Positions 4,685 to 61,283 of a stretch of DNA of 64,000 nt are shown here, one piece after another. The stretch comes from Syncephalis fuscata S228 (lineage: Eukaryota; Fungi; Zoopagomycota): assembly GCA_025786725.1 (NCBI GenBank), contig JAHLTZ010000004.1, forward strand, positions 434,001 to 498,000, read 5' to 3'. Made by a program: the position numbers and the translations under genes. Under the pieces are notes generated by a model that was not told the origin of the DNA, did no database searches, and saw only the letters and a program-made list of their open reading frames with translations. The first letter of the stretch is position 1. Every line of letters begins with the position of its first letter.

Positions 4685-6616
4685 TTAACTATGTGCGCTA
4701 GTCGTGCTGTAATATGTAGCATTCTTAACTATCGTTTGTGTATCTGGATCAATGTTTGACGACATAAGTGCGCTGTTACAAGGCGTATGTCTAATTTGCA
4801 TATTTTGTACCCAGGTTGTAGTATCACTCTTGTTGTTCACGTTAATTGCTGCTTTGTAGTTATGCCGACTATCAGACTTTGGACGCAAATCAATAATGAA
4901 AAGAAGCACACTAATACGTATAATACACGAAATTTTAAAAAGAACCACACGAGCAAGTTCTGCCGCAACACCAAAACGCCAAGCACTTGTATTTTCCATA
5001 ATATTTGAAGTGAACATCATCAAAAATCCCAATGAAAATATTGCACATATTTTTGTCACCTAGAATGGCAGTGGTAAATATTGATGCTTTTCTATTTTGT
5101 TTGGTAATTTGCTTCCATGATACTTACTAATAACAACGCATGTTTCGCACTACTATTTGTCAATAGATTGTCCTGTTTTAGCCAAAATATTATACCTAAA
5201 GACAAACAGTTTAGTACGATAGTATTTAAAACGGGTATTGTATTGTTACCGTAATACATGAATGTAATGACAATGATGATTTGAATTGCTGACGTAAATC
5301 GAGCACAAGCTATTCTCATTATGCTCTGACCAACAAATGGCGGGGTGAATTCACAAATAAAATATAATATTCGCTCAATAATCATCGTTACAGACGAAAA
5401 AATAATAACGTAGCGAAGCAGTTGTAAATATCGACTATCATTTACGCTAATTGCAATTGAGTGCCTATTCATTATTATTATTATTATTATTATTAGTATT
5501 AGTAATAGTAAGTTTTAATCAAGTCAGTGGCATTTCTTTCCACAGTATATAACATACCAGAAAAACAGTAGCGTGTAAAACCCAATGTATATAAAAATGC
5601 TTTGAAAAAATCTTATCCATTCGTAAGCCAAGCTATTTAGTTTGAGTGTGAATGCGGACGTGAATACTAAACACATACAACTAGACGTTTAGTGTGCTAT
5701 TAACACTATTAATTACGAGTCTACTTACGTATTGCAGCACACAGCGCAGAAACATAAATTATAATGTGATATCTTGTAATAATTCTCTTTGTTTTGATCA
5801 GGTGGTAGAGAATTACAAAATTATAAAGCACAATACTTATAAATATTGCCATTGCGCAATATATAAATGCTCGATAGCCAGTTGATAAAAAAACATCATT
5901 CCAAGGTCCAGGCTCTATAGATACACATTTTATATATTAGCTAGTGTGCAAATATGATATCCAATATCAAAGTAAATTAATTACCTTCTTCGACTGTTAC
6001 AATGACTGTCGTGCTTAGCTCATTGTTTGCATCTAAAACGGTCCGATAGTTATCATATGGGAGCAATGCGATATTGATTGGTGAAGTGCCCTCGTAAAAA
6101 TAAAACCCGAATCTTTTATGACTTAAGCTTTGATGCGAACCAAAGCCAATACCTGGTTTTATATGTGCATGTATAGTATTGTGTCGATCGAGAATCCGCT
6201 TGTAGCATTTAAATACTGATTAAGTGCAGAAACTGCGAATCCTGCCTATTATAATAATAGTTAGAATATACTATCGCAATACTAATGATGACTATTTACA
6301 TGGGTAACTGTTTTACAGCCGCGATACTTTGCTTTCTTTGCATCAATAGCAATAATCACACTTGTGATGTTGTCAGATGTTACGCTATTCAATGCAGATC
6401 GAGCTGTATCAAGGATAGATGGCAATATTTCGCATGCTGCATTTTCATTAAACACAGCATCTACCAAGATGCCACGAGTTGTATACGGCGCAACTTCAAC
6501 CTCAAATAAATCCAATGTGGGATATTGGAGTGTCTGATTGCCTACACGAAACGTGGCCGTACCAAGGACGGACACGGCAAAGCAAACAGTAATATAAGCG
6601 TCTCTATAATCTTCAT
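4685..6616 (-). CDS. Orphan PA-like-ectodomain 7TM receptor, copy R1 (multi-exon, with homopolymer frameshifts)
   Basis: Exons are homologous to R2: FAVSVLGTATFRVGNQTLQYPTLDLFEVEV, EPGPWNDVF, HSIAISV, FMYYG, VTKICAIFSLG. Intron positions are the same. ATG at 6616 needs one T restored to join the frame. Confidence 0.75.
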
Positions 6617-8169: not shown

Positions 8170-8800
8170 TAGTAAACCATTTTACGCAATCCATTGTAAT
8201 GATTTAAATAGTTGACGAGTTGATTGGATTAAATTGTGTTTAAATATCATTACAATAAATAATGAAATGTATACATTATCATTTTATAATAGAATAGAAT
8301 TAAATGTACAGAACATTGTATCAGTAATATATTAACATTTAAATAACAATGTACATACTATTTGATTTCATTGAAATTGAGCCGATATTGTTGTTTTGAT
8401 CATGTTAGAATATTGATCGAATATGAATAGAAGCCATATGATTGCAATTCCATGTCATTCCGCATTTGTTGTTGTTGCATCTACGTACAATGGATTTTGC
8501 ATCTGAATGGTCTGTTCTATTTTCTAATATTCTACTGTTGCATTTTGGGCATATTTGTGATGTAGATCAATATAATATAATTATTATAAAAGTTGTTTAT
8601 TAAACAGCCATTTTCTATAGTCAATCTGACTAAATAAATGGCATTTGAACAATTATATTATAATGACAATGTATATATTAAAACAATAATAAATATAACT
8701 AATTAATTACATTATTGTATTGAAATTACACATAAATTAATTAATGTTGGATGCAATATTATACATTTATAGTAATGAATGGGTGTTTAATTGTGTCTAA
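8170..8800. repeat. Diverged direct copy of the non-coding segment 45750-46378
   Basis: Shared strings such as ttgatcgaatatgaatagaagccatat, ttattaaacagcca and aattaattaatgttggatgcaat...gtgtttaattgtgtctaa occur in the same order. Confidence 0.85.
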
Positions 8801-8939
8801 AAGTGAAGGAAATGAAATGAGTAAATAAAAAAAGCTAAAAATTGCTGTAACTATACGTAATGTTAAATAATTTATTAGTACACTTATGCATCCAGTGTCA
8901 AAGATAAAGCTGACATCTTTACTTAAATGAACTGCACAT

Positions 8940-39191: not shown

Positions 39192-41643
39192 ATGCTATTG
39201 GGCACCTCACCTATTCTAGTAGTTTTCGCCTCTATTCTACTATCATGGCTACTATTTGTGGTATATAGCCGAGTAAAGAGCGGAGCATATACGCGTGGCA
39301 AAGTTGTTCGATGCTTTTACTGCCATCAAAAGACACGGCTACCACTTGCCCAGACAGCATCAATTGGCGCAGATTTAAGTTTGAGAAAGAATACAAAACA
39401 TAAAATGGAAACGCCATATGATTGGCATTGTCAATATTGTCAAAATAGAAATTTACGTGATTCTGTAAGTAGGATGTGGTTTATGATGGTACAATAATGT
39501 TTATAATATGAACTTTGATAGCAAGGAGAACTTGTCGATCAAGTGCCAGCAATGTTTAGCGAATTATCAAATCCAATTTCTCAATGGAAAAGTAATATCT
39601 AGATGCAAATCATTATGAAAACTAATGGCTATTTATCGTTTATTTTTAGATAATACGCAATTTGTGGAGACTCGACGACGACGTAGATGTCAAGGACTAA
39701 GCGATACAGAACTTTTAAGTGATGATGAGGAACTTAATATACCATTTTGCAATGGCTGCCTATCAAATCATAATATGGTATTACAGCTATTGGCTACATA
39801 TAAACCGGATGAATCGGTAAATAGACACGGTATTTGTTATAAATGTATAACTAATGAATATTGTAAACTAATAATAGAATCCGAATTTTAAAGACTACGA
39901 TACAGCTATAGAAATGTATCGAATTAAGGTGGAAGAGCGGTATCCATCTTTATGTAAGGAATGTGCACCTAGAGTTGAAAACAGAATTGCTCAAACAAAT
40001 GCTCGAGTAAGAGCACGCTACTTTGGCGAATCACTTTTACGTTCGAAAAAAACGCCTTTCGTTAATAATCTGCCACTTTTTCGATGGTGGAAAGTGCTAA
40101 TTTGGCTATCAATATTTGTTGTTGAGTGGATTTCTCGAGGTCTAATGTTTTATATGTGTTGGTCGGGACACGTCAGTTTATTGCGTAAGTTTTGTTTTTT
40201 ACTTGCACAATAAGACTTACGTATAACGAATATTTAGTTTTACCACCTATAACTATAATAGGCATTACCGATAATATAGCAAAATTGCCGCTTATTAAAT
40301 ACACAACTATAGAAGAGAATGGTATTTATTTGATTTTAAGTATGGCTTGTTGCACTGTGCTATGGGATCCAACATGGCTTCGTCGAGTATATAAGCGACA
40401 GCGAAAATATCCACGTAGACTAGCCTATTATCGAGTAGGTAGCATATCTCTTTCCAATATTATTACTAATGTTAATATTTAGCTATGTCAAGCATTTCTA
40501 TGTGCTATGAGGCTAACATTGATTAAACTGTCTGATGAATTTTTAATATCCAATCAAGGATATTTATTACGATATAGTTTTATTTTATTATCTACTATGG
40601 TAAATATATAAAAATACACTTGTTGCAGCATTGTACTTAATACAAATATTTAGTTTATTGCACTATCTTGGATCTATACGCCAGTAGCACCAAGATTAAT
40701 TAGTTTGTGCAAAAATCCCACAACAAAAGTTCGTCGCATTCAATTACGGCCATTGCCGGTAAGTAATTGTAGTGTAAATCTGTATATATCTAACCAATAT
40801 ATACATATTCTCAGAAGCGAACTGGAAACAAATCTATGCGTACAGAACAGCCCATGAGTGGAGAGAGTGACAATGCGATATCGCCTTTTTCGACACCACC
40901 TAGCTCGTCTAAGCGAACTATTAGAGAGCGACGAAGAGATACAAATGCACTTGTATTTAGCGATGATGATGAGGATACATTATGTGCAGATACCCAGTAT
41001 ACAACATCGCTGGGCACGATGCTTCAGAATCTAACACTAGGCACGCCTCGAATAGGTCGTTCGCGCCAATCTACAGTTGCTGTTGATAATAAAAAGAAAG
41101 GGAAAAAATCCCGTGCAGTTAAACGCAATAGAGCAGCTATCTCCCTGCCTCCTGCCGCTTTGACGCCACGAGATAGTGATGCTGAGGCTGATAGTATGGA
41201 TTGGATGCCAAGTACACCGCACGGTCAACGAAAACAGCCGTATCGAGATACACGTAACATTATATCACGCCCGCCACCAACATCAGCCGATATACCAATG
41301 AGTGGCTCTATAGGAGCAACAGGATTGTTTCGTGTACCGCCTTCATTCCATAACCAAAATCCTTTTGGCCAGACTTATTTGACAGATGTTATGGCACAAC
41401 AACAAGAGCATAGAAAACGACACGGTACGCAAGAAGATGGTAATAGCTATAACACTGTTGGTAATTCGCTTATTACAAACAATGATAAGGTAGGTGGCAG
41501 TAGAATGTGGACTTGTAAACTTCAAATGCTAATAATGCATATAATTATAGGAAACGGGACTGGAAAAGTTATTTCAGCAATCGTTTCAAATTCGCGACAG
41601 TACAAGCATTACTGCCCGTGTAAAACAATGGTTTTCTAGCTAA
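39192..41643 (+). CDS. IMA1: Inner nuclear membrane protein Ima1 / TMEM201 family (multi-exon)
   Basis: Four CxxC motifs (CFYC, CQYC, CNGC, CKEC), EERYPSLC, TM helices, last exon ETGLEKLFQQSFQI. The start codon is uncertain. Confidence 0.88.
40495..41269. repeat. Right arm of the ~0.77-kb inverted repeat (inside Ima1)
   Basis: Reverse complement of 7304-8077 with only a few substitutions. Confidence 0.95.
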
Positions 41644-41951
41644 TATCAGAATTGAATGCATTATTTATCCAAGTTTATTATTAATGTACAAAATAAATAC
41701 TTATACAGCAAATTGATCTCCACCACTTGCTACTTTGTCGCATGCTATACCCCCTGTTTCTATTTGTATCACAATTACTAGTTATGTGCATTATATAGGG
41801 ACATCAAAACAAGTTCAATAGCTATGGAAAAAAGCCATGCTTTTATCGAGCCCACCATGCAACTGACAAAAGCATTATATATATTAAATGGTCTTGTTCA
41901 GTTATGCTGTATTTTCCATCTAATTCATTTTATACTGCATAATTATATACA

Positions 41952-43808
41952 ATGTTTAATAGCATGGTAACGCTTTTAATACTGCTATCCTTTGCCGTGT
42001 CCGTCTTTGGAACAGCTACATTTCATGTAGGCAATCGAACATTCCAATATCATACACAAGATTTGCTTGAAGTTGAAGTTACACCGTATACAACTCATGG
42101 TGTTTTAGTGAATGCCGTGTTTAGCAAGAATGCATCATGTGAGATATTGCCATCTGTTCTTGATACAGCTCGATCTGCATTGAGTAGCGTAAAATCCGAC
42201 AACATCACAAGTGTGATTATTGCTATTGATGAAAAGAAGGCAAAGTACCATGACTGTAAAACAGCTACTCATGTAAATAGTCATCATTAGTATTGCGATA
42301 GTATATTCTAACTATTATTATGAATAGGCAGGATTCGCAGTTTCTGCACTTAATCAGTATTTAAATGCTACAAGCGGATTCTCGATCGACACGATACTAT
42401 ACATGCCACATATAAAACCAGGTATTGGCTTTGGTTCGTATCAAAGCTTAAATTATAAAAAAAAGAAGTTTAGTTTTTACGAAGGTGCTTCGCCAGTTAA
42501 TATCGCATTGCTGCCGTATGATAAATATACGATTATTGTGGATGCAAGCAGTAAACTGAAAGTAACGACCATTGTAACAGTTGAAGAAGGTAATTGGTTT
42601 AGTTTGATATTGGCAATTATATTTCACGCATTAGCTAATGTATAGACTATATATTTATAGAGCCAGGACCCTGGAATGATGTTTTTTTATCAGCTGGCTA
42701 TCAAGCGTTTATAAATTGTACACTGATTGTAGTTATGAGCATCATACTATACAGCTTTGTAATTCTGTACAGCTTGATCAAAGCAAAAATAACTATTACT
42801 AAGCAACACATTTTTATCTATGTTTCTGCACTGTGTGCTGCAGTATGTAAGGCAAACTCGTTACTATTAATATGAATAGCATGCTAAACAGTTTTTCTGT
42901 GCGTTTAGTATTTGTATCTGGACTAACACTTAGACAAAGCAGTGTAGCTTATAAATGGATACTATTTTTTCAAGGAGTTTTTTTATACATTGGGTTTTAT
43001 ATATTAATATTGCTATGGTATGTTATTTAATGAAGCAAAGTTTACTATTGTTATATCTAAAAACTTGCTAATAATAATGAATAGGCACTCAATTGCAATT
43101 GGCGTGCAAAAAAGTCGATATTTACAACTGCTTCGATATGCTATTATTATTTCCCTTATAAATACGATTATAAATCGAATATTGTATATTATTTGTGAAT
43201 TTATTCCATTATCTACAGCGCAGGGTATAATGCAAATAATTAGTGGTCGTTTTGTATTGTTTTCTCAATCTATCATTATCATTGCATTCGTTTATTACGG
43301 TAATACTATAATACGATTTCTAAATAATATAATTCTAAACTTTGGTGCTTAGGTATAATGTTCTGGTTAAAACAAGGCGATTTACTAGCAAATAGTGCTG
43401 CAAAGCATGTACTGTTATTAGTAAGTATAGTAATTATACTAGTATGAAAGTATAAAGTCGCAATACTTACCAATAGCATATTAGGTAACAAGGTTATGTG
43501 CAATATTTTCATTGGGATATTTGATGATATTTATTGCAAATATGATGAAAAATGCAAAAGTTTGGAACTACAGTGTTGAGGCTGAATTTGCTCGTGTGAT
43601 TCTTCTCGAAATCTCGTATGCTGTGCGTATCAGTGTGCTTCTTTTTGTTATTGGTCTACGTTCAAAGTCTGATGGCCAGTGTAAAGATCTAGCGACAATT
43701 AATGTAGACAACAGAGATAATACTACAACATTGGTACAAAGTACGTATAATAATTACGACTTTCATGCTTGCGCGATCATGTCATCAAACATCCAACCAG
43801 ATGGATGA
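41952..43808 (+). CDS. Orphan PA-like-ectodomain 7TM receptor, copy R2 (7 exons)
   Basis: Signal peptide MFNSMVTLLILLSFAVSVFG, ~170-aa ectodomain with 2 Cys, EPGPWNDVFLS, and seven hydrophobic segments after splicing at GT-AG introns. Confidence 0.85.
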
Positions 43809-44666
43809 CTGGTATTCAAAGATAGTACATGCTATAACACGACTACCATATCTAATTAAATTAGTACATGGTTTGTCAGTAATGGAAAATCACTTGATGC
43901 TGTTTATTACGTTGACAATAGCCATTATCTTTAATTATAAAACACAAATGTAATATACTATCAACAAACTATTTCTAAACACATAGATTTTTTCTGCATA
44001 AATAGAATAAAATATATAAAAACAAGTAATTCAGTAACTGAAAAATGCAGGAATATGACATGTTTATACAAAGTATACAACAGACGTGGACAGATGTGCG
44101 ATAGGCAGCTCAATGATTGATCTAAACTGTAGAAACCATGCTATAAACACTAATTACTATACTGAAATAAATGTACAATAACCGATCGGCATTATACTTA
44201 TTTATTCATTGCGCATGTTGCAAATGGTAAATATCAAAGGTTTACGAATAAAGTAGTACTACCAGTAAATAGCTTTTATACATTAATGTCATGCGCGACA
44301 TGTCCATATATTATTGCCTAAGCCGTTGTTGATTACAAAATGCATGTTTATTATCAGCGATTTAAAGTAACAAATATGAATTTAATAGTTTGCTGAGCTG
44401 GACGATGCTAATCAGCATGTTTGAAGTGTCTTTATGATATAAACTGATATAAACATACCAAATACATATATTACTATTTGTACTACTAATGGATTTGTAT
44501 AAACAGCATAGTACACACACACATCGACACGCCATACATGAATACTGCACAGGCTGTTTGTCCAACTAATATTATCAATATGAATGGTTATTGCTAACAA
44601 TATTGCACAACATTAAATAGTACGTTAATAATTACACAGCACATGTCAATTATTATTTGTTTAATT
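43574..44666. repeat. Left arm of a ~1.09-kb near-perfect inverted repeat (partner 46650-47748)
   Basis: Identical translations on opposite strands (43765-43953 + and 47369-47557 -). Arms differ by a (GT)n length and a few SNPs. Confidence 0.97.
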
Positions 44667-44701
44667 GTTAAATACTAATTGTTGCCATACAATATAGTTA
44701 A

Positions 44702-45546
44702 TTAAATCTTGCCTAAACGTTTACGAAGAGCACGTGTTCGCTTTCTCAGCTTTCTTCGCTTATGCTTGTTCATTTTCAATTTACGTTTACGTTTAATACT
44801 TGTAGCATAAAGTGGAGCAGGTTTTTGGTTTTGTGTTGGTAGTGGTTGTTGCTGTTGTTGAGTAATCTTGCTACCTTCTTTTAAAAATCCATTGGCAAGC
44901 AACTGACTGTTGACGATACCACTACCTTCAGCATCTCCCTCTAAGCCGTGCTGTGCCCAATAATGCGGATCGGCTGCTGGTGAAAGCACACGTGCTACAG
45001 CTGGTGCGGTCGATGGACGTACCAATTTTGGCGGATGAAAGGGTAGAAAATAGTGAAATTTTTCTGCTAACGCTTCCATTGCTAATTGAGCATTAATATA
45101 TTAATATTAGCAATAAGTTTCCTGTGTTTAACAAATATTTAACGTGTTAACTCACCATTATCCTCGGCTTTGCTTTGTTTGCGTCCTGTGGTCGTCCACT
45201 CTATCGTGATTGCCTCGTCATCTTCAGTCATAAAAATAGAGCGGGGTCTTGATGATGGCTGGTACGAAAGTAGTGGTCGGTGTAGCGCGTAGAAACGATC
45301 TTGCGCCACCGTCTTCGACTCAGCTGCCGATGCCTGTAAGGAATCACCCAAGTGTGAGGGTGCAGGGGGCGGATAGGCTGCTTGCAATGAATTACTCACA
45401 TAGTAGGTTCGTTGCTGCTGGTGAGATCGAGCTGGCTGCATCGCCACGCTGGACAAGGACGACAATGGCTGAAAGCAGCGAGTACAGCCACTGCTCACCC
45501 AACGACGGGTCTGCCCGTTTAGTGAGTGCGCAAGTGACATGGTCAT
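44702..45546 (-). CDS. COX24: Mitochondrial small-subunit protein mS38 / Cox24 family (DUF1713), 2 exons
   Basis: C-terminal TSIKRKRKLKMNKHKRRKLRKRTR, FYALHRPL, presequence-like N-terminus. Confidence 0.85.
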
Positions 45547-45749
45547 CGAAGAAGAACTTGCAGCACTCACGCTTTCGTGCACGCGCACTCAAATACAAGA
45601 ATCGATGTGGAGGAGAAATAAGCGTTCAGTAATCAACAGACCGGTAAGAGCCGGTAATAAGGAAGGAAAATGTATTATTATAAAACTTTTTTGTTATAAT
45701 TTTCATTATTATATTTTTGGTTAAAGTTTACTTTGAGTCTCCCCAGGCA

Positions 45750-46378
45750 GTAAAACTTTTTACGCAATTGATTGTAATGATTTAAATAACTGATTTGTGT
45801 TTAAATCATCGTTTATAATAAATATTAAAGCAATATTATTGTTTATTATCATTTCCATAAAATATAATTGATTAAATGTAACAAAACATCGTATCAGTAA
45901 TAATATTAAACATTTAAATAAACAATGTAACATACTATTTGATTTCATTGAAACATTTAAGGTTGATCATTATTATTGCTGGCTATGTGTAGAAAGATTG
46001 ATCGAATATGAATAGAAGCCATATAATTGCAACTCCGTGTTATTCCGCATTTGCTGTTATTGCATTATAATAATGATCTTTTCTATTTTCTAATATTCCA
46101 CTATTGCATTTTGGGCATATTGTGCTGTAAGATCAATATTAATATAATTATTATAAGTGTTGTTTATTAAACAGCCACTTTCTCTATAGCCAATCCGACT
46201 AAATAAATGACATTTTGAACAATTAATATCATAATGACAATATATATGTATATTAAAACAATAATAAAGATAACTAATTAATTACATTATTATACTAATA
46301 ATTACACATGAATTAATTAATGTTGGATGCAATGTTATACATGTTATAGTAATGGATAGGTGTTTAATTGTGTCTAAG
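45750..46378. repeat. Non-coding segment also present at 8170-8800
   Basis: Colinear shared strings (see 8170-8800). Confidence 0.85.
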
Positions 46379-46649
46379 TATTAAAAAAATGTAAATGTTA
46401 AAATGCAATAGCTCCATGTTTTTAATCCTTTTTTATGTTATCATACATTTTTGCTGTTGTATCTTTTGTTATTACATTCTATATTAATACTAGTGATTTT
46501 ATTGTTAGTATTAGCTGGATTGCATTGTATTATGTATAAAATTGTTTAGTGTCAAATTATGTATTTACGCCATTATATAATAAAAAGTAAAAAAATACTA
46601 TAAACCATTATAAATTGACAGTGCTTAAGCAATGCCTACTAAAATAATT

Positions 46650-47748
46650 AATTAAACAAATAATAATTGACATGTGCTGTGTAATTATTAACGTACTATT
46701 TAATGTTGTGCAATATTGTTAGCAATAACCATTCATATTGTTAATATTAGTTGGACAAACAGCCTGTGCAGTATTCATGTATGGCGTGTCGATGTGTGTG
46801 TGTGTGTGTGCTATGCTGTTTATACAAATCCATTAGTAGTACAAATAGTAATATATGTATTTGGTATGTTTATATCAGTTTATATCATAAAGACACTTCA
46901 AACATGCTGATTAGCATCGTCCAGCTCAGCAAACTATTAAATTCATATTTGTTACTTTAAATCGCTGATAATAAACATGCATTTTGTAATCAACAACGGC
47001 TTAGGCAATAATATATGGACGTGTCGCGCATGACATTAATGTATAAAAGCTATTTACTGGTAGTACTACTTTATTCGTAAACCTTTGATATTTACCATTT
47101 GCAACATGCGCAATGAATAAATAAGTATAATGCCGATCGGTTATTGTACATTTATTTCAGTATAGTAATTAGTGTTTATAGCATGGTTTCTACAGTTTAG
47201 ATCAATCATTGAGCTGCCTATCGCACATCTGTCCACGTCTGTTGTATACTTTGTATAAACATGTCATATTCCTGCATTTTTCAGTTACTGAATTACTTGT
47301 TTTTATATATTTTATTCTATTTATGCAGAAAAAATCTATGTGTTTAGAAATAGTTTGTTGATAGTATATTACATTTGTGTTTTATAATTAAAGATAATGG
47401 CTATTGTCAACGTAATAAATAGCATCAAGTGATTTTCCATTACTGACAAACCATGTACTAATTTAATTAGATATGGTAGTCGTGTTATAGCATGTACTAT
47501 CTTTGAATACCAGTCATCCATCTGGTTGGATGTTTGATGACATGATCGCGCAAGCATGAAAGTCGTAATTATTATACGTACTTTGTACCAATGTTGTAGT
47601 ATTATCTCTGTTGTCTACATTAATTGTCGCTAGATCTTTACACTGGCCATCAGACTTTGAACGTAGACCAATAACAAAAAGAAGCACACTGATACGCACA
47701 GCATACGAGATTTCGAGAAGAATCACACGAGCAAATTCAGCCTCAACA
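46650..47748. repeat. Right arm of the ~1.09-kb inverted repeat
   Basis: Reverse complement of 43574-44666. Confidence 0.97.
47514..47748 (-). pseudogene. Truncated 3' fragment (TM7 and tail) of receptor R2
   Basis: VEAEFARVILLEISYAVRISVLLF...QPDG is identical to R2. There are no upstream exons, and the thiolase stop is 60 bp away. Confidence 0.9.
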
Positions 47749-47808
47749 TCATATTGCAAATATCAATAGTATAAATGAATTTATTTGCAATTGGCTGCTA
47801 TTGATTCA

Positions 47809-49549
47809 TTAAAGGTGGGCAGTCAAATAGTTGCTATGACCTGAGACAATCACTTGATCAAAGTCATCCTTAGTAATAGAATGACACTCAATTGCTGGAT
47901 TGTAACCAAAACGTTTACGAGGATCAACGGCTGCCGTCTTGCCCTTTTCCGTCTTTAGTCCACAGTGATGGTAAAGACCGATGACTACAGCACCGCCTAA
48001 TCCGATGTTATGCTGCAAAGCTACTTGTAGATTTGGTACTTGGCGATCGCCGCACCATCCACGTAATTGCCACACTAGTTCAGCACACTGTGCCAGTCCA
48101 GTGGCTCCTAGTGGGTGGCCTAGTATTTACAGATGTATTAGCTATTGCACACGACTAGTGATCCAATTCATGACGCAACATACCCTTTGAAATAAGACCA
48201 CCCGACGGATTTACTACGCATTTGCCACCAAATGTATTATTATTTTGATCGACCATCAAATGTGCTTGTCCTGGCGCGCATAATCCTAAAGCATCATAGG
48301 TAATTAACTAAACAGAGTGCAAGATAAACAAGGTTATAAAAATAAAAAACAAATATATTTATTTCAAGTCTTACCTCGTTGGCCGAGAAACAATCGTGTA
48401 GTTCTACCACGCCCACTTGCGATGGCGATATGCCTGTTTGCTTATAAACTTGTTCAGCAGCACATCGTGTCATATCGGCACCGGCCAATTCAATAGCACT
48501 TCCTTTAAGTGCCTTTGGAGAATCGGTTGCCATCGTCTGGCCGGCCAACTCAACAGCTTGTGCTTCAAGGCGATGCTCGCGTACAAATGCTTCCGATACA
48601 AGGATAGCCGCGGCACTGCCATCAGACGTAGGGCAGCATTGCAGCATGGTAAGTGGTCCGTGTACAGTACGTGATTTTTTCACCTGATCAAGTGTGTAAA
48701 TGTCGCGGAATTGAGAATAAGGATTGTTGGCACTGAATGTTATTATTAATAAACTATTCTATATCTGTTGCTGCAGAACACTCACCTATGTCGATGGTTC
48801 TTCTCGCCAATCTTCGCCATATGTTCTGGTGTTGCGCCGTATTTCTCGCAGTACTCTATACCGGCGTTACCGAATATCTGGGCTGGTGGCGGGCCTTTGC
48901 TAAATCCACGCGTTTCAGCCATAATCCCAAAGTTCCAATCTATCGACAAAAAATTAAATTATTGTAAGCGCACAGCTTACAATCAATGGTACATCTTTTT
49001 TTGTTACCTAAAGGTGCAGTACGGTCGTTAAACTTTGACGATAAAGATCCTAAACAGCATATCCAACATATTTAATTTATTTTACGTTAATTATAAAACA
49101 TTTTTGTTTACCTGGATCCATCTTCTCAAATCCTAGTGCCAAAACACAATCAGCAGCACCTAGCTCTATTTGCTGACGAGCCATATAGAGGGCGGTACTG
49201 CCCGTACTGCAGTTATTATTTACATTAACAATAGGAATTTGTGTTTGGCCAAACTGATAAAGTGCACGCTGGCCACAAGTACTATCGCCGTAACAGTAAC
49301 CTACGTAGGCCGACTCTACTGCATTGTATTTGATATTAGCATCAATCAATGCCTTGGTAACTGCTTCGCGTGCCATATCTACAGAAACACACGGAAAAGC
49401 GGTATTAGTGTGTTAATAGTTGGTCAAGTGTTCGTGAACAGCCATATAGATACCTGGGTAGTCAAAATTGTCTCGACGTCCCGGCTTTCAAACTTGGTCA
49501 TGCCCACACCAACCACGTACACTTTGTTATGAAGGCGTTGTTTAGTCAT
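47809..49549 (-). CDS. SCPx-type peroxisomal thiolase (non-specific lipid-transfer protein thiolase), multi-exon
   Basis: [68 protein letters not shown]1-like C-terminal AHL. Confidence 0.93.
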
Positions 49550-54504: not shown

Positions 54505-56428
54505 TTATGGATGACCACTGGCGTGGCTAGTGTTGTTGTAGTTATAGAATCTTCCACCATCGGCTCTGGTTGGTGAGGCAGTGGCTGGTGTTGGCATATG
54601 TCCCGACATCACGGCACTGTCGCCCGAGAAGCAAGAATGAGAGCTTTTTGGTGATAGTGCCGTGTGTTTCCTATTAGCACCTGTGCCCGTTTTATTGCTG
54701 CTATCTTTAGGAGTGCCAGAACTTGGACCAAGATCGAGGATAAAGAGAAGAACAATAATGCGTATGGTGTAGCTTAGACGATTGAGAACAATACGAAATA
54801 CTTCGCCACCAACGCTATAGTAACATATGTTTACCACTTCGAGCATGGTCGCGTAAATACAAGTAAATAGCCAAAGAAGCATATTATACAAATATTTGTT
54901 ACCTAAGGTAAGTTATTACACATTAGTATTAATAATGGAATGGAGAGGTAGCAGATGTCTTACTTTAGCCAATGCATCCTGCGTTGATCGGCTAACAATT
55001 GATTTTCGCTGACGGAACCAGAAAATAATGCCTATTAATTGTGATTAAATCACCAATGTTTAAAGTAATTCATTGTTTTAACTTACCATAGTAGGTGAAT
55101 AGGGCCAATACAACATTTGGATGGTAACTACCATAATGGTAATAATTATATAGACATTGGTTCCTGATATAAAGTTGGAGACAAATCCAAAGAGAATAAA
55201 CAAAAAGAATTTGACCATGGCCATAGTGAATGAGCCAATAATGATGTATTTAACAACCTTGAGATAATGGACATTTTGCACACCTTTTACAATAGAGTGC
55301 CTATATAATTGCACAATTTTGGCATAATGTTAGTGCGGTATTGGTTGGTAAAAGAATAGCATACCACAATAAAAGTAACAGATGAAATGCAATATTTGTA
55401 AAAAACTCTAGTACATTGTCTATCCAAATATATGATGGCGTGGCTATTGGTAGTAGTATCTCGCTCATAAAACTAGTAAATAGCATTAGATACAAGCTTG
55501 TTCTACAACTTTTGTTAGACTTACGTATAGAGGAAAGGAACGCAAATGCAAATATCAATGTTCGATACTTTGACATATATCTGCCTGCTCTTATCATCTT
55601 CGTCAGTACGAATATACTACGTAGTAAGAAAAACAGGTTAAGTGCAAATAAAATGTAGATTTGGGCCTTGTAGGTCGGGGATAACATGGAGTCATTCCAT
55701 ATGCCTTGTTCTGCAAAGGTAGTTGGTCAGCGCTTACGTGATCTCAAAGCAATATACTCATAATGATAGCCTACCTTCTCTTATACTAATGGTCATTGCC
55801 GCGTTGTTTGTGTTTTTCTTACGAACGTCAGCATAATCTATTGCGCGCATAAGAGCCATAGGGATGGGCGATTGGCCGCTCGGAAACCAAAATCCGAATG
55901 TAACATAATCGGCACCATAAACACTGCCATCAACGGGCCCTCCCATATTTGCAAGGAGATAGAGCACATTTTCTATCGATACGCCTTTAATAGTTCCCGT
56001 TGATTTTTTGAATTTATAAACCGAGATACCCGGCTAAAACAGTTACATAGTATGTTATCATTTAGAAACAGTTAAACAGTAAGGCTTACATGTACAACGG
56101 TGTGGCATCCGAAAATGGATGCTTGGACAGCATCAACTACAATGGTTAGATTGACCACACCATTTGGATTTGCCGATTGATCAATGATGCTTTTAGCAGT
56201 GTCTATCATTTGTGTTGTAAGTTCGCAGTCGCCATCTTTTTTAAAGGTGGCGTTCACGGCAAGTCCAGTGATAGAGTAAAAGTCGCTGCGGAATTCAAAT
56301 AAATCCTGTGTCGGATAAGTATAGTTTTTACCGCTCACTTGGAAAGTGGCTTCTGATGCTACCAGTTGCGTGTAACAAAGCAAAAGTGTGAGCAGTCCCG
56401 CCGTAAATAAAGTGATCCAGGCTGCCAT
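54505..56428 (-). CDS. Orphan PA-like-ectodomain 7TM receptor, copy R3 (most divergent)
   Basis: Signal peptide, ATFQVSGKNYTYPTQDLFE, SPIPMALM, EQGIWND, FHLLLLLW|HSI. Same exon layout as R2. Confidence 0.82.
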
Positions 56429-56963: not shown

Positions 56964-58730
56964 TTAATCCTTGCTTTCTATCATGGTTTGTGAACTTATG
57001 GATTGCTTTGCTATTGTAGAAGATCGACAGATAAAGCCAAATACAAAAAGGAGGGCCACGCTGCGTATTACAGTTCCGAGATTATTTAATATAAGCATTA
57101 TAAGTTGAAGAGTTGGATTATTTGTTTTCATGTTGGCAAGAGCCAGTACAACTGCAATGAAAACAAGAGTAACTCCAACTGCGCATAAAATACAGATTCT
57201 TATCACCTATTCGGATTCACACGAGGTAGTCAGCGGATGAGAAGCGTATGGCGCTTTGTTATTTTCAACCTACCAAGTCTAAGGCATTTTTTGCAGTTTT
57301 GTTTGTAGTAAAATTTGATTTTTTAAACCAGAAAAAAATGTCTAGATGCGTAATAAATCAGCTTTAATGCCACTATATTGAATGTTTACGACTTACTATA
57401 TCCAGCAAATGTTAGAACTGCAATAGCCTGACATACTATTATGCTGATGACGTTTATATTGTACGTCAAAAGTCTCCAATCACTAGGCACAATATCGCTA
57501 ACCAAGCTTCCAAAAGCAATAATAGTGTTAAATAAAAGTGAGATCCATAAAAAATATTTAAATATTACAAGAATTAAGGTTTTTTTTAACTTTATCATAA
57601 GGGAGTGCCTGTTAATAGACAATTAAAGCTTAGCTTTAAGTGTGTGTTTTGGATAATTAATATATATTATATGGCTTACCATAAAAAGAAAAGAAGATGA
57701 AATGAAATGACACCGAAAAAGTTTCGAGTAATAGTCAACCAGATAAACGTTACAGATGTTTGCTTCATTGGAAGACTTATAACAGTGACTTTTATATGTT
57801 TTTTTGTTAGTTTCATCATATAATTAGCATTAGATATTCTTACTTATAGTGCTAGCAAGTCCAAACAAATATATAATCATGTGTTGGTTTAAATCAAATT
57901 GTCGTCTTTTGATAAGCCCGTATACAATTACATAGGTATACAATACAGAGACTATAGTCGCGGCCATTAAACAATATATAAACGCTTCATAGGCTTTTGA
58001 TAAAAAAATGTCATTCCAAGGTCCAAATTCTATAGAAAACATAATAATGCACCTGATTAATAAATGGACACATCTATTTAATTTTGTTGCTTTATTACCT
58101 TCATTAACCGTTGCAATAATTGCTGTGTTTAATTTTTTGCTGATACCAACAGCTTTTTGATAGTCGCTTCTTGATAATAGTGCAATATTAATTGATGAAT
58201 CACTTTGAGCGAATTCTAGATAAAATGTATAATATGGTAGAGACGTGTAGGCACCGAAATTAGGGCCGGGTTCTTGGTAGATCACATATAACATAGTGTC
58301 GATTGAAAAGCTATTTTTAGCGTTCATGTGCCGTCTAAGCTTCCCAATTGCAGTTGACGTCTAATTAGAATGTTAATAAAAATACCGCTATAATACGATA
58401 ATCGTCACCTACATAACCAATTGTTTCGCATCCACATTTGGTTGCTTCATCTTCGTCAACAACAATAATTACACTTGTGATGTTGTCCAATTTTACACTA
58501 TCCAATGCAGAACGAGCTGTATCAAGAACAGATGGCAATATTTCACATGATGCATTCATATTAAACACAGCATCTACTAAAACACCATGAGTTGTATACG
58601 GTGTAACCTCAACTTCGAACAAATCTTGTGTGTGATATTGAAATGTTTGATTGCCCACACGAACCACCGCAGCGCTAAAAACCAATGGGATGCAACATAA
58701 CAATAAAACGAACACTTTTACAACCAGCAT
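56964..58730 (-). CDS. Orphan PA-like-ectodomain 7TM receptor, copy R4
   Basis: MLVVKVFVLLLCCIPLVFS, VGNQTFQYHTQDLFEVEV, EFGPWNDIFLS, FHLLFFLW|HSL. Short C-terminal tail. Confidence 0.82.
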
Positions 58731-59357: not shown

Positions 59358-61283
59358 TTAATTAGATATGGTAGTCGTGTTATAGCATATACTATCTTCG
59401 AGTACCGGTTGTACATCTGGTTGGATGTTTGACGACATGATCGCGCAAGCATGAAAAGCGCGATTATTACATATACTTTGTACTAATGTTGCAGTATTTT
59501 TTTTGTTGTTCGCTTCAATTGCCACTTTATCTTTACAGTAACCATCAGATTTTGGACGTAAATCGATAACAAAAAGAAGCACACTAATACGCACAACATA
59601 CGAGATTTTGAGAAGAACCACGCGAAAAACTTCGGCCTCAACACTATAGTTCCAGACTTTTAGATGATACAGCATATTTGCGGTAAATGCCATCAAATAT
59701 CCCAATGAAAATATTGCACATAACCTTGTTACCTAATATGCTATTGGTAAGTATTGCAACTTTATACTTTGATACTAGTATAATTACTTATACTTACTAA
59801 TAACAGTGCATGCTTTGCAGTACTATTTGCTAGTAAATCGCCTTGTTTTAACCAGAACATTATACCTAAGCACAAAGTTTAGAATTATATTATTTAGAAA
59901 TCGTATTATAGTATTACCGTAATAAACGAATGCAATGATAATATAAATTGAGATGGTGCCAAAAGAAGAGTAATGACCATATGTACTGTATCGTATACCA
60001 CAGATGCTGGAATAAATCCATAAATAGCAGATAGCACTTGATCGATAATCATAATCACAAACGAGATAATAATGCCGTAATGAAGGAAAAGTAAGTATTG
60101 GCCGTTTTTCACATTGATTGCAATTGAGTGCCTATTCATTATTATTAGTAGTAGTATTAGTATTAGTAAATTTTAATAGAGTTAGTACTATTTTTTTGTT
60201 AAAATGCACAACATACCATAGCAAAAGTAGCAAGTAGAATCCGACGGACATGAAAAATCCTTGAATAGCACTTATGCATTGGTATTTCAAACTATTTATT
60301 TTGAACGGGAATCCAATGACACACGCTAACATAGAACCAATTGATTAGTATTTTGTTAATATTAAATTGGAAAACTGTCTTACATATTGCAGCACATAGC
60401 GCAGAAATATACATCACAATATGTTGCTTAGAAATAACTCTTTTTGTTTTGATCAAGCGGTATAATACTGCAAAGTTGCATAATATAACAACTATAAGTG
60501 CAGTCAGCGTGCAATATATAAATGCTCGATAGTCAGCCGATAAAAAAACATCATTCCAAGGTCCAGGCTCTATGGATACACAGTTTATACATTAGCTAGT
60601 CTGCAGAATATGATAGCAATATCAAAGTAAAGCAATCACCTTCTTCGACAGTTACAATGACTGTTGTGCTTAAGTCATTGCTTGCATCTACGACAGTTTT
60701 ATAATCATCACATAGTAGTAGTGCAACGTTGACTGGCAGAGTGCCTTCGTAAAAGTAAGATCCCGTTCTTTTATACTTTAAGCTGTGATATGCGCCAAAA
60801 CCAGGTCCTGGTTTTGTATGAGGTATGTAAAGTGCCGTGTCAATCGAGAAGTCACTTGTATCATTTAAATGTTGCTTAAGATTAGAGATTGCAACACCCA
60901 CCTAATAATAATAATAACGATTAAAACATGCTGTTGCAATCACTACACTGATGGCTTACGTGAATAATTGTTGCACATCCGCATTCTTTTGCTTTCATCA
61001 GATCAATAACAATAGTGACGCTTGTAATGTTGTCGGATTCTACGCTATTTAATACAGATCGAGCTTTATCAAGAACAGATGTTGATATTTCGCATAATGC
61101 ATTTTCATTAAATACGGTATTAATTAGAACGCCACGAGTTGTATACGGTGCAGCTTCAACTTCAAACAAATCTTGTGTGTGATATTGAAATGTTTGATTA
61201 CCCACGCGAAACATGGCCATACCAGAGACGGACACAACAAAAAACAGCAGCGTTAAAAGTGTTATTATGCTATTCATCATCAT
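59358..61283 (-). CDS. Orphan PA-like-ectodomain 7TM receptor, copy R5 (1-bp frameshift ~59940, probably an error)
   Basis: MMMNSIITLLTLLFFVVSVSG, EPGPWNDVFLS, GFYLLLLLW|HSIA, FVYYG, VTRLCAIFSLGY. Confidence 0.82.

Follow-up and report, generated by a model that had tools for sequence, protein, structure and literature searches.

Recurrent interlocus gene conversion as the probable source of mosaic patches in clustered receptor paralogues of the mycoparasite Syncephalis fuscata

The zoopagomycete Syncephalis fuscata, which parasitises other fungi, carries five members (R1-R5) and one fragment (46650-47748) of a receptor gene family in the 64,000-nucleotide stretch of its genome analyzed here (C306:434001-498000; hereafter the window, to which all positions given without a contig name refer). 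One of these members, R2, shares a near-identical internal patch with R1 and a second one with R5, and these patches are set within genes which are otherwise only 65-78% identical at the nucleotide level. We consider recurrent interlocus gene conversion among the clustered receptor paralogues to be the probable explanation of this pattern, at roughly 85%. Patchwise exchange of sequence had been proposed in a first-pass annotation of the window, and it is borne out by tracts that are specific to particular pairs and include introns, by their sharp borders and diverged flanks, and by a switch of the sister of R2 from one segment to the next with support of 100/99. The accompanying portrayal of R2 as a mosaic stands with respect to its patches from two partners; however, R2 is neither the only mosaic nor always the recipient, for R1 and R5 are mosaic as well.

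The R2 gene (41952-43808, forward strand) was modeled on the basis of reading frames, GT/AG borders and intron lengths linking the frames as seven exons with 494 codons (E1 41952-42272, E2 42328-42589, E3 42661-42846, E4 42909-43017, E5 43085-43299, E6 43353-43420 and E7 43485-43808), separated by introns of 53-71 nt each. Its splice junctions are also used by the NCBI models of the paralogues P0014 and P0001, and its predicted product comprises a signal peptide, an ectodomain of ~190 amino acids and seven transmembrane (TM) helices. The partners R1 (4742-6593) and R5 (59415-61280), both on the reverse strand, keep the same seven-exon layout. A single 919-kb contig holds all three genes at spacings of 17-54 kb, R2 being in the opposite orientation to the other two. 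The searched genome (29.4 Mb in 371 contigs) contains at least 21 paralogues of the R2 type (70-77% nucleotide identity), in addition to many more diverged loci, and the paralogue background shows a median dS of 0.6-1.0 with dN/dS of 0.2-0.6 per exon. With a synonymous divergence of about 0.6-1.0, R1, R2 and R5 represent old duplicates within a receptor family specific to this lineage.

The first patch, tract A, has a core at 42270-42451 of R2, which covers intron 1 and the first 124 nt of exon 2 and corresponds to 6302-6123 of R1. In both the three-way and the 21-paralogue alignments R2 and R1 are separated here by two substitutions in 180 sites and two 1-bp indels (98.9% identity), as opposed to 71.4% identity between R2 and R5 over the same interval; R1 and R5 are 71% identical there. 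Intron 1 by itself is 98% identical between R2 and R1 versus 60% between R2 and R5, with a family median of 64%. The first-pass annotation, which had described ~42273-42450 as nearly identical to ~6125-6299 of R1 next to a differing intron 1 in R5, was therefore right down to the coordinates. Upstream of the core, a shoulder at 42144-42269 is ~90% identical to R1, and the tract thus extended (42144-42451, codons ~65-149; 6123-6428 on the reverse strand in R1) displays 95.1% identity between R2 and R1 versus 73% between R2 and R5. Relative to R2, R1 has two 1-bp deletions in this tract, one of which shifts the frame of exon 2.

The second patch, tract C (43275-43526 of R2, aligned to 59942-59691 on the reverse strand in R5), begins with the final 25 nt of E5, runs through intron 5, E6 and intron 6, and extends 42 nt into E7, covering codons ~357-401. 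Here R2 and R5 are 98.0% identical, with five substitutions in 251 sites and two indels, and R2 and R1 are 75.0% identical. Introns 5 and 6 show 96% and 95% identity between R2 and R5 versus 72% and 57% between R2 and R1, and the proportion of synonymous differences (pS) across E6 and the beginning of E7 is 0 between R2 and R5, with values of 0.2-0.75 between R2 and R1. The left border is sharp, being preceded by a stretch of ~62% identity, and R5 has a 1-bp deletion exactly at this border (R2 position 43274). The near-identity of ~43280-43525 to ~59695-59940 of R5, coupled with a different intron 6 in R1, is thus as the annotation had it, but the R5-like 3' tract is not confined to that interval. 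It runs on through the rest of exon 7, the premature stop codon of R2 (43806-43808) and the 3' flank (segments D and E, 43527-44103), with R2-R5 identity of 80% in segment D (43527-43780) and 93% in segment E (43781-44000), until homology ends at ~44103, matching R5 59114. The R5-affiliated part of R2 hence amounts to ~830 bp, from 43275 to ~44103, and its three depths of divergence (98%, 80% and 93% identity) suggest that younger transfers were superimposed on a long, older one.

Between the two tracts the genes are far apart: the TM exons E4 and E5 are 58-72% identical in every one of the three pairs, in keeping with the greater divergence of the TM exons described in the annotation. Tracts A and C are internal to the genes and bounded on both sides by sequence of 62-78% identity. 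A comparison extended to ~20 genomic paralogues indicates that the second-best match to R2 within the tracts reaches only 75-84%, and that outside them R2 lacks a consistent closest relative. Further, in the tract pairs introns 1, 5 and 6 are 95-98% identical as against family medians of 61-70%, a difference for which purifying selection on the protein offers no explanation. One might instead envisage that selection on a functional element, such as an intronic RNA or a regulatory module, has kept these stretches nearly identical, given that the tracts take in whole introns. However, the conservation is specific to pairs, with the same introns being 57-72% identical in other pairs and 61-70% family-wide, the partners alternate along a single gene, and 40000-48000 yielded no Rfam match at E<=1. 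Selection of this kind is accordingly a vanishingly improbable account of the patches.

Maximum-likelihood trees built for each segment, with approximately unbiased (AU) tests on alternative placements, recapitulate the change of partner. The upstream part of E1 places R2 with the paralogues L004 and L009 (81/96); tract A unites R2 with R1 (100/99, path length 0.054); the middle of the gene unites R2 with L005 (96/93), and a clade of R2 and R5 is rejected there (p-AU 0.0004); tract C unites R2 with R5 (100/99, path length 0.054), as do segments D (path length 0.23) and E (path length 0.11), each with support of 100/97. Identity profiles and per-segment trees, which had been named in the annotation as ways of checking a mosaic, thus converge on patches of 98-99% identity and on a sister of R2 that switches between segments at 100/99.

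Statistical analyses point in the same direction. When the variable sites were shuffled 2000 times and the best fragment scored, none of the 2000 permutations attained the observed values (R2-R1, z=33, or 34 in a family-wide run; R2-R5, z=30, or 30.5 in that run). A 3SEQ-like walk over 537 informative sites gave a maximum descent of 151, as compared with a mean of 61 and a maximum of 90 in 20,000 shuffles (p<5e-5). Within 42250-42449, 56 of these sites group R2 with R1 and 3 group it with R5; within 43250-43549, 68 group it with R5 and 6 with R1. Binomial tails at background divergence are 6e-22 and 2e-24. Uniform divergence along R1, R2 and R5, an outcome that would have contradicted a mosaic, is rejected by the permutation, 3SEQ-like and segment-tree tests alike, and chance is excluded as the source of the pattern.

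A third patch, tract U, lies outside the receptor genes proper. It occupies 775 bp (40495-41269, forward strand) in the 3' exon of an Ima1-like gene upstream of R2, and its counterpart (8077-7304, reverse strand) lies in a decayed fossil of an Ima1 3' end beside R1. The upstream open reading frames (ORFs) of the Ima1-like gene match Pfam Ima1_N weakly, below the gathering threshold. The two copies of tract U are 99.5% identical, differing by three substitutions and one 1-bp indel; both borders are sharp, with neighboring sequence of 50-80% identity, and the tract is both longer and less diverged than tracts A and C. On the R2 side the ORF at 40836-41639 is intact, and the R1-side fossil contains four in-frame stops. 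Immediately downstream, the Ima1 exon at 41270-41640 differs from the fossil (7303-6930) by 90 transitions and 22 transversions; repeat-induced point (RIP)-like mutation of the fossil is ruled out by the symmetry of the changes (C>T+G>A 49 versus T>C+A>G 41). In the same neighborhood, repeats of 80-82% identity link the far side of R1, the spacer of an inverted repeat downstream of R2 and a third site (8171-8819 with 45749-46397, and 8381-8564 with 17977-17788); they could represent a dispersed element or a piece of a duplication unit.

Taken together, these tracts are best accounted for by a process in which stretches of a few hundred bp were copied non-reciprocally and repeatedly from locus to locus. 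The route would presumably be homologous repair, either synthesis-dependent strand annealing or repair of heteroduplex, with each event overwriting exons and introns alike and leaving a patch of 98-99.5% identity inside genes of 65-78% identity. Short tracts and non-reciprocal transfer are features ascribed to interlocus conversion in PMC3924818. Both partners retain the full gene structure and their copies are 2-5 substitutions apart; such full-length yet non-identical copies fit a copy-and-paste process followed by slight divergence. A crossover chimera does not fit, as both loci are full-length and the tracts are internal with diverged sequence on both sides; neither does a retro-copy. At least four events of differing age may be discerned at R2, namely tract U (0.4% divergence), the core of tract A (1.1%), tract C (2%) and the older segments D and E (7-20%). 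The young tracts, at 0.4-2% divergence, are comparable to probable haplotig pairs, which differ by 0.4-0.8% in substitutions. The net effect would be partial homogenization between pairs along with new combinations of exons in each gene.

Direction can be proposed for several of these transfers. The R2 locus was apparently the donor of tract U and the fossil beside R1 the recipient, because the ORF is intact at the former and decayed at the latter. For segment E, the sequence shared by R2 and R5 groups with L004 (90/95), the relative of R5 in the unconverted middle of the gene, and its grouping with L005, the corresponding relative of R2, is rejected (p-AU 0.0013); R2 is therefore the likely recipient of a transfer from the R5 lineage. 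In the case of tract C, L005 is the closest relative of the sequence common to R2 and R5, at 70/85; as the alternative is not rejected (p=0.33), we do no more than lean toward a transfer from R2 to R5. Transfers thus appear to have run both ways, with R2 acting as donor as well as recipient, such that mosaicism would be a property of the cluster as a whole rather than of R2 alone.

The wider family provides more instances. A further tract connects R1 (5856-6035) with R5 (60511-60690), both on the reverse strand, from the last part of E2 through intron 2 into E3, at a position equivalent to 42539-42719 of R2. R1 and R5 are 90.5% identical here, and R1, R5, L004 and L009, all on the same contig, are 90-98% identical among themselves over the stretch equivalent to 42534-42727, with R2 not sharing the sequence; this stretch is possibly a conversion hotspot. 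In a survey of 19 non-redundant paralogues (171 pairs), with z>8 as the threshold for a tract, 12 pairs show one, and ten of these fall among the 31 same-contig pairs (Fisher p=5e-7). Those ten pairs are 3-186 kb apart, in direct and inverted orientation alike. Intrachromosomal ectopic repair would be expected to favor linked copies in this way. L015, which sits at one end of contig C77 (C77:9-1989), belongs to both of the remaining pairs; its 5' half is 98.8% like L019 and its 3' half is 98.5% like L014. L019 and L014 are adjacent on C328 (384340-389031), and L015 is probably a haplotig whose allele is an unequal-crossover fusion or a deletion.

The better-conserved exon blocks might serve to anchor transfers: of eight tract ends tested, five are no more than 20 bp away from a block in the 87th-99th percentile of conservation, an association that is only suggestive. 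No convincing internal repeats were found at the tract borders.

Certain observations weigh against gene conversion as set out above. The right border of tract A and the left border of the R1-R5 tract are not beside conserved blocks. The flanks, at 65-78% identity, are lower than what is usually considered permissive for homologous repair. No direction is favored for tract A by either third-party similarity profiles or AU tests, and the signal for tract C is weak. Further, the tracts are known from a single consensus assembly, in which frameshifts interrupt two of the genes: two in R1 (~6590 in E1 and ~6165 in E2) and one in E5 of R5 (~59943, at the border of tract C). These frameshifts could be either assembly errors or real lesions.

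The last of these points raises the question of whether the mosaic could have arisen in assembly or polishing, with reads of one paralogue shaping the consensus of another. The assembly does have visible 1-bp indel errors and haplotigs, and the left border of tract C coincides with a 1-bp indel. The two copies of a haplotig pair are separated by 6-8 single-base indels per 1.5-1.8 kb, and the family members display a strong excess of frame-breaking 1-bp deletions (e.g., R1, R5, L006/L016 and L018/L020), which are likely to be errors of the long-read consensus and on account of which many members have truncated NCBI models; the recorded product of R2, P0001, has just 128 amino acids (E6-E7), and that of R1, P0003, starts in TM1. 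However, 1-bp indel noise of this kind is typical of long reads, and hence single reads would have spanned each 2-kb gene together with its unique flanks. Moreover, reads of genes that share 65-78% identity outside the tracts are too different to cross-align, and each patch differs between its partners by 2-5 substitutions. The tracts are also almost confined to linked genes, to which an aligner is blind, and the four tracts with their distinct divergences, ranging from 0.4 to 20%, have the appearance of a history. An artefact is for these reasons a very unlikely source of the patches.

A different objection concerns the mechanism: replication-based template switching, whether as microhomology-mediated break-induced replication (MMBIR) or as fork switching between inverted repeats, might have operated instead of conversion initiated by double-strand breaks. 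R2 is inverted with respect to both partners at distances of 17-37 kb, the low homology of the flanks makes microhomology-driven switching conceivable, and a truncated inverted duplicate of the 3' end of R2, 1.09 kb long, lies 2 kb off. Nevertheless, the tracts found across the family join direct as well as inverted pairs, and homologous sequence is replaced precisely, with no insertions, junction scars or change of copy number. We accordingly regard template switching as decidedly unlikely, and gene conversion remains the preferred reading.

The inverted repeat just mentioned has its left arm at 43574-44666 and its right arm at 46650-47748 (reverse strand), with both ends sharp and the arms differing by four substitutions and a (CA)3 indel. 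The right arm, ~2 kb from the left, is a truncated copy of exon 7 of R2 (from codon ~400) together with downstream DNA. The premature TGA of R2 (43806-43808) falls inside the left arm, and within the part alignable to R5 the sole difference between the arms is at 43902. Within R2 itself, introns 1 and 4 end in nearly the same 17-nt motif running into the exon (42314-42330 and 43071-43087), which suggests a shared 3' splice-region signature. The two other members in the window, both on the reverse strand, are R3 (54595-56392), which is very diverged, and R4 (57003-58682). Exon 1 of R4 (58452-58663) is 88% identical to that of R2 and 78-85% to those of other members, and the rest of R4 has ~26-43% protein identity; this looks like an older transfer of exon 1 into a diverged subfamily member.

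As to the identity of the receptors, a search of 1.84 billion cluster representatives with an exon 7 profile built from 13 paralogues retrieved no more than 13 proteins, and the relatives that word searches turned up were confined to S. fuscata, S. pseudoplumigaleata and S. plumigaleata. No Pfam family was recovered at E<=5 with the full-length proteins P0018, P0014, P0015, P0013 and P0005, nor any with the R2 exons searched singly, and a profile search against PDB sequences returned no relative. The Lung_7-TM_R/GOST family, suggested by a UniRef name attached to P0018, is likewise without a Pfam match at E<=5. An AlphaFold model of the complete member P0013 from a 14-row alignment reached a pLDDT of 63 and a pTM of 0.51 (an earlier AF2 model from a 9-row alignment, with a pLDDT of 50, was unusable). 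Its ectodomain is predicted to be of the alpha/beta type, with the top Foldseek matches being the PA domains of ZNRF3/RNF43, of GRAIL and of the transferrin-receptor apical domain (E 1e-3 to 1e-2, TM-scores 0.4-0.5). The seven-helix bundle aligns with class A G-protein-coupled receptors (GPCRs) in VIA-align at Z 15-17 over ~245 residues with a root-mean-square deviation of 4-5 Å, slightly above the noise of ~13-14 for helical bundles. Look-alikes in a protein atlas fall in Zoopagomycota and Endomyxa clusters, one of which has a PA domain in 10% of its members. These matches weakly favor the label given to the receptors in the first-pass annotation, and the family may tentatively be viewed as combining a PA-like ectodomain with a GPCR-like 7TM body. 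As P0013 is only ~25% identical to the R2 subfamily, this fold is assumed for R2 itself. The resemblance to PA-domain receptors and to 7TM proteins of the GPCR fold thus lies in the modeled ectodomain and seven-helix bundle; the family differs from them in lacking any Pfam or PDB sequence match, and the confidence of the model is moderate.

These results amount to a statistically solid case for recurrent interlocus conversion in lineage-restricted orphan receptors of a mycoparasite. As a practical consequence, phylogenies and orthology assignments of this receptor family will mislead unless they are built segment by segment, and the same problem is probable for other clustered families of the S. 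fuscata genome. A more far-reaching proposal, which we regard as unlikely, is that the cluster constitutes a diversification device, in which conserved exon blocks anchor the shuffling of variable cassettes (ectodomain segments and the TM5-loop 3-TM6 region) among receptors whose divergence would otherwise keep them from recombining. If this were true, a host-sensing mycoparasite would gain a combinatorial repertoire of PA-7TM receptors, much like NLR or antigen-gene clusters, and since the ages of the tracts are close to allelic divergence, the shuffling might still be segregating among strains. The parallel to immune-receptor diversification drawn in the first-pass annotation is likewise conjectural, the background dN/dS being 0.2-0.6.

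Programmed conversion of cassettes is familiar from the trypanosome VSG genes, the msg genes of Pneumocystis and the pseudo-V donors of chicken immunoglobulin genes. The R2 cluster resembles these in having mosaics assembled from patches of paralogues, and in that R1 and the Ima1 fossil look broken and yet still exchange sequence. It differs in that no expression site, silent donor array or directional bias has been shown, and in its tracts being few and of evolutionary age. A dedicated silent array feeding one-way transfers into an expressed copy, as in programmed cassette diversification, is not what the cluster displays: the transfers appear to have gone in either direction, and across the family there are tracts between seemingly intact genes too.

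The closer parallel is with the ordinary conversion of clustered duplicates, of which olfactory and other chemoreceptor genes, plant NLR clusters, the MHC and duplicated genes of Drosophila and Caenorhabditis are instances. Interlocus (ectopic or non-allelic) gene conversion is described for clustered multigene families in PMC3924818, PMC3966223 and PMC2588116. The likeness extends to short non-reciprocal transfers that include introns, sharp borders, incongruent phylogenies of segments and a preference for linked copies. There are also differences. The family studied here is an undescribed orphan restricted to Syncephalis, and its partners are unusually diverged outside the tracts (65-78% nucleotide identity, dS 0.6-1.0); conversion is more often seen between near-identical duplicates than with flanks of ~70% identity, and this is the one feature that specialists may find notable. 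To our knowledge, data on molecular evolution are almost absent for the fungal phylum Zoopagomycota. Gene conversion as such is textbook knowledge; what is new is this example of it in an unstudied receptor family and phylum.

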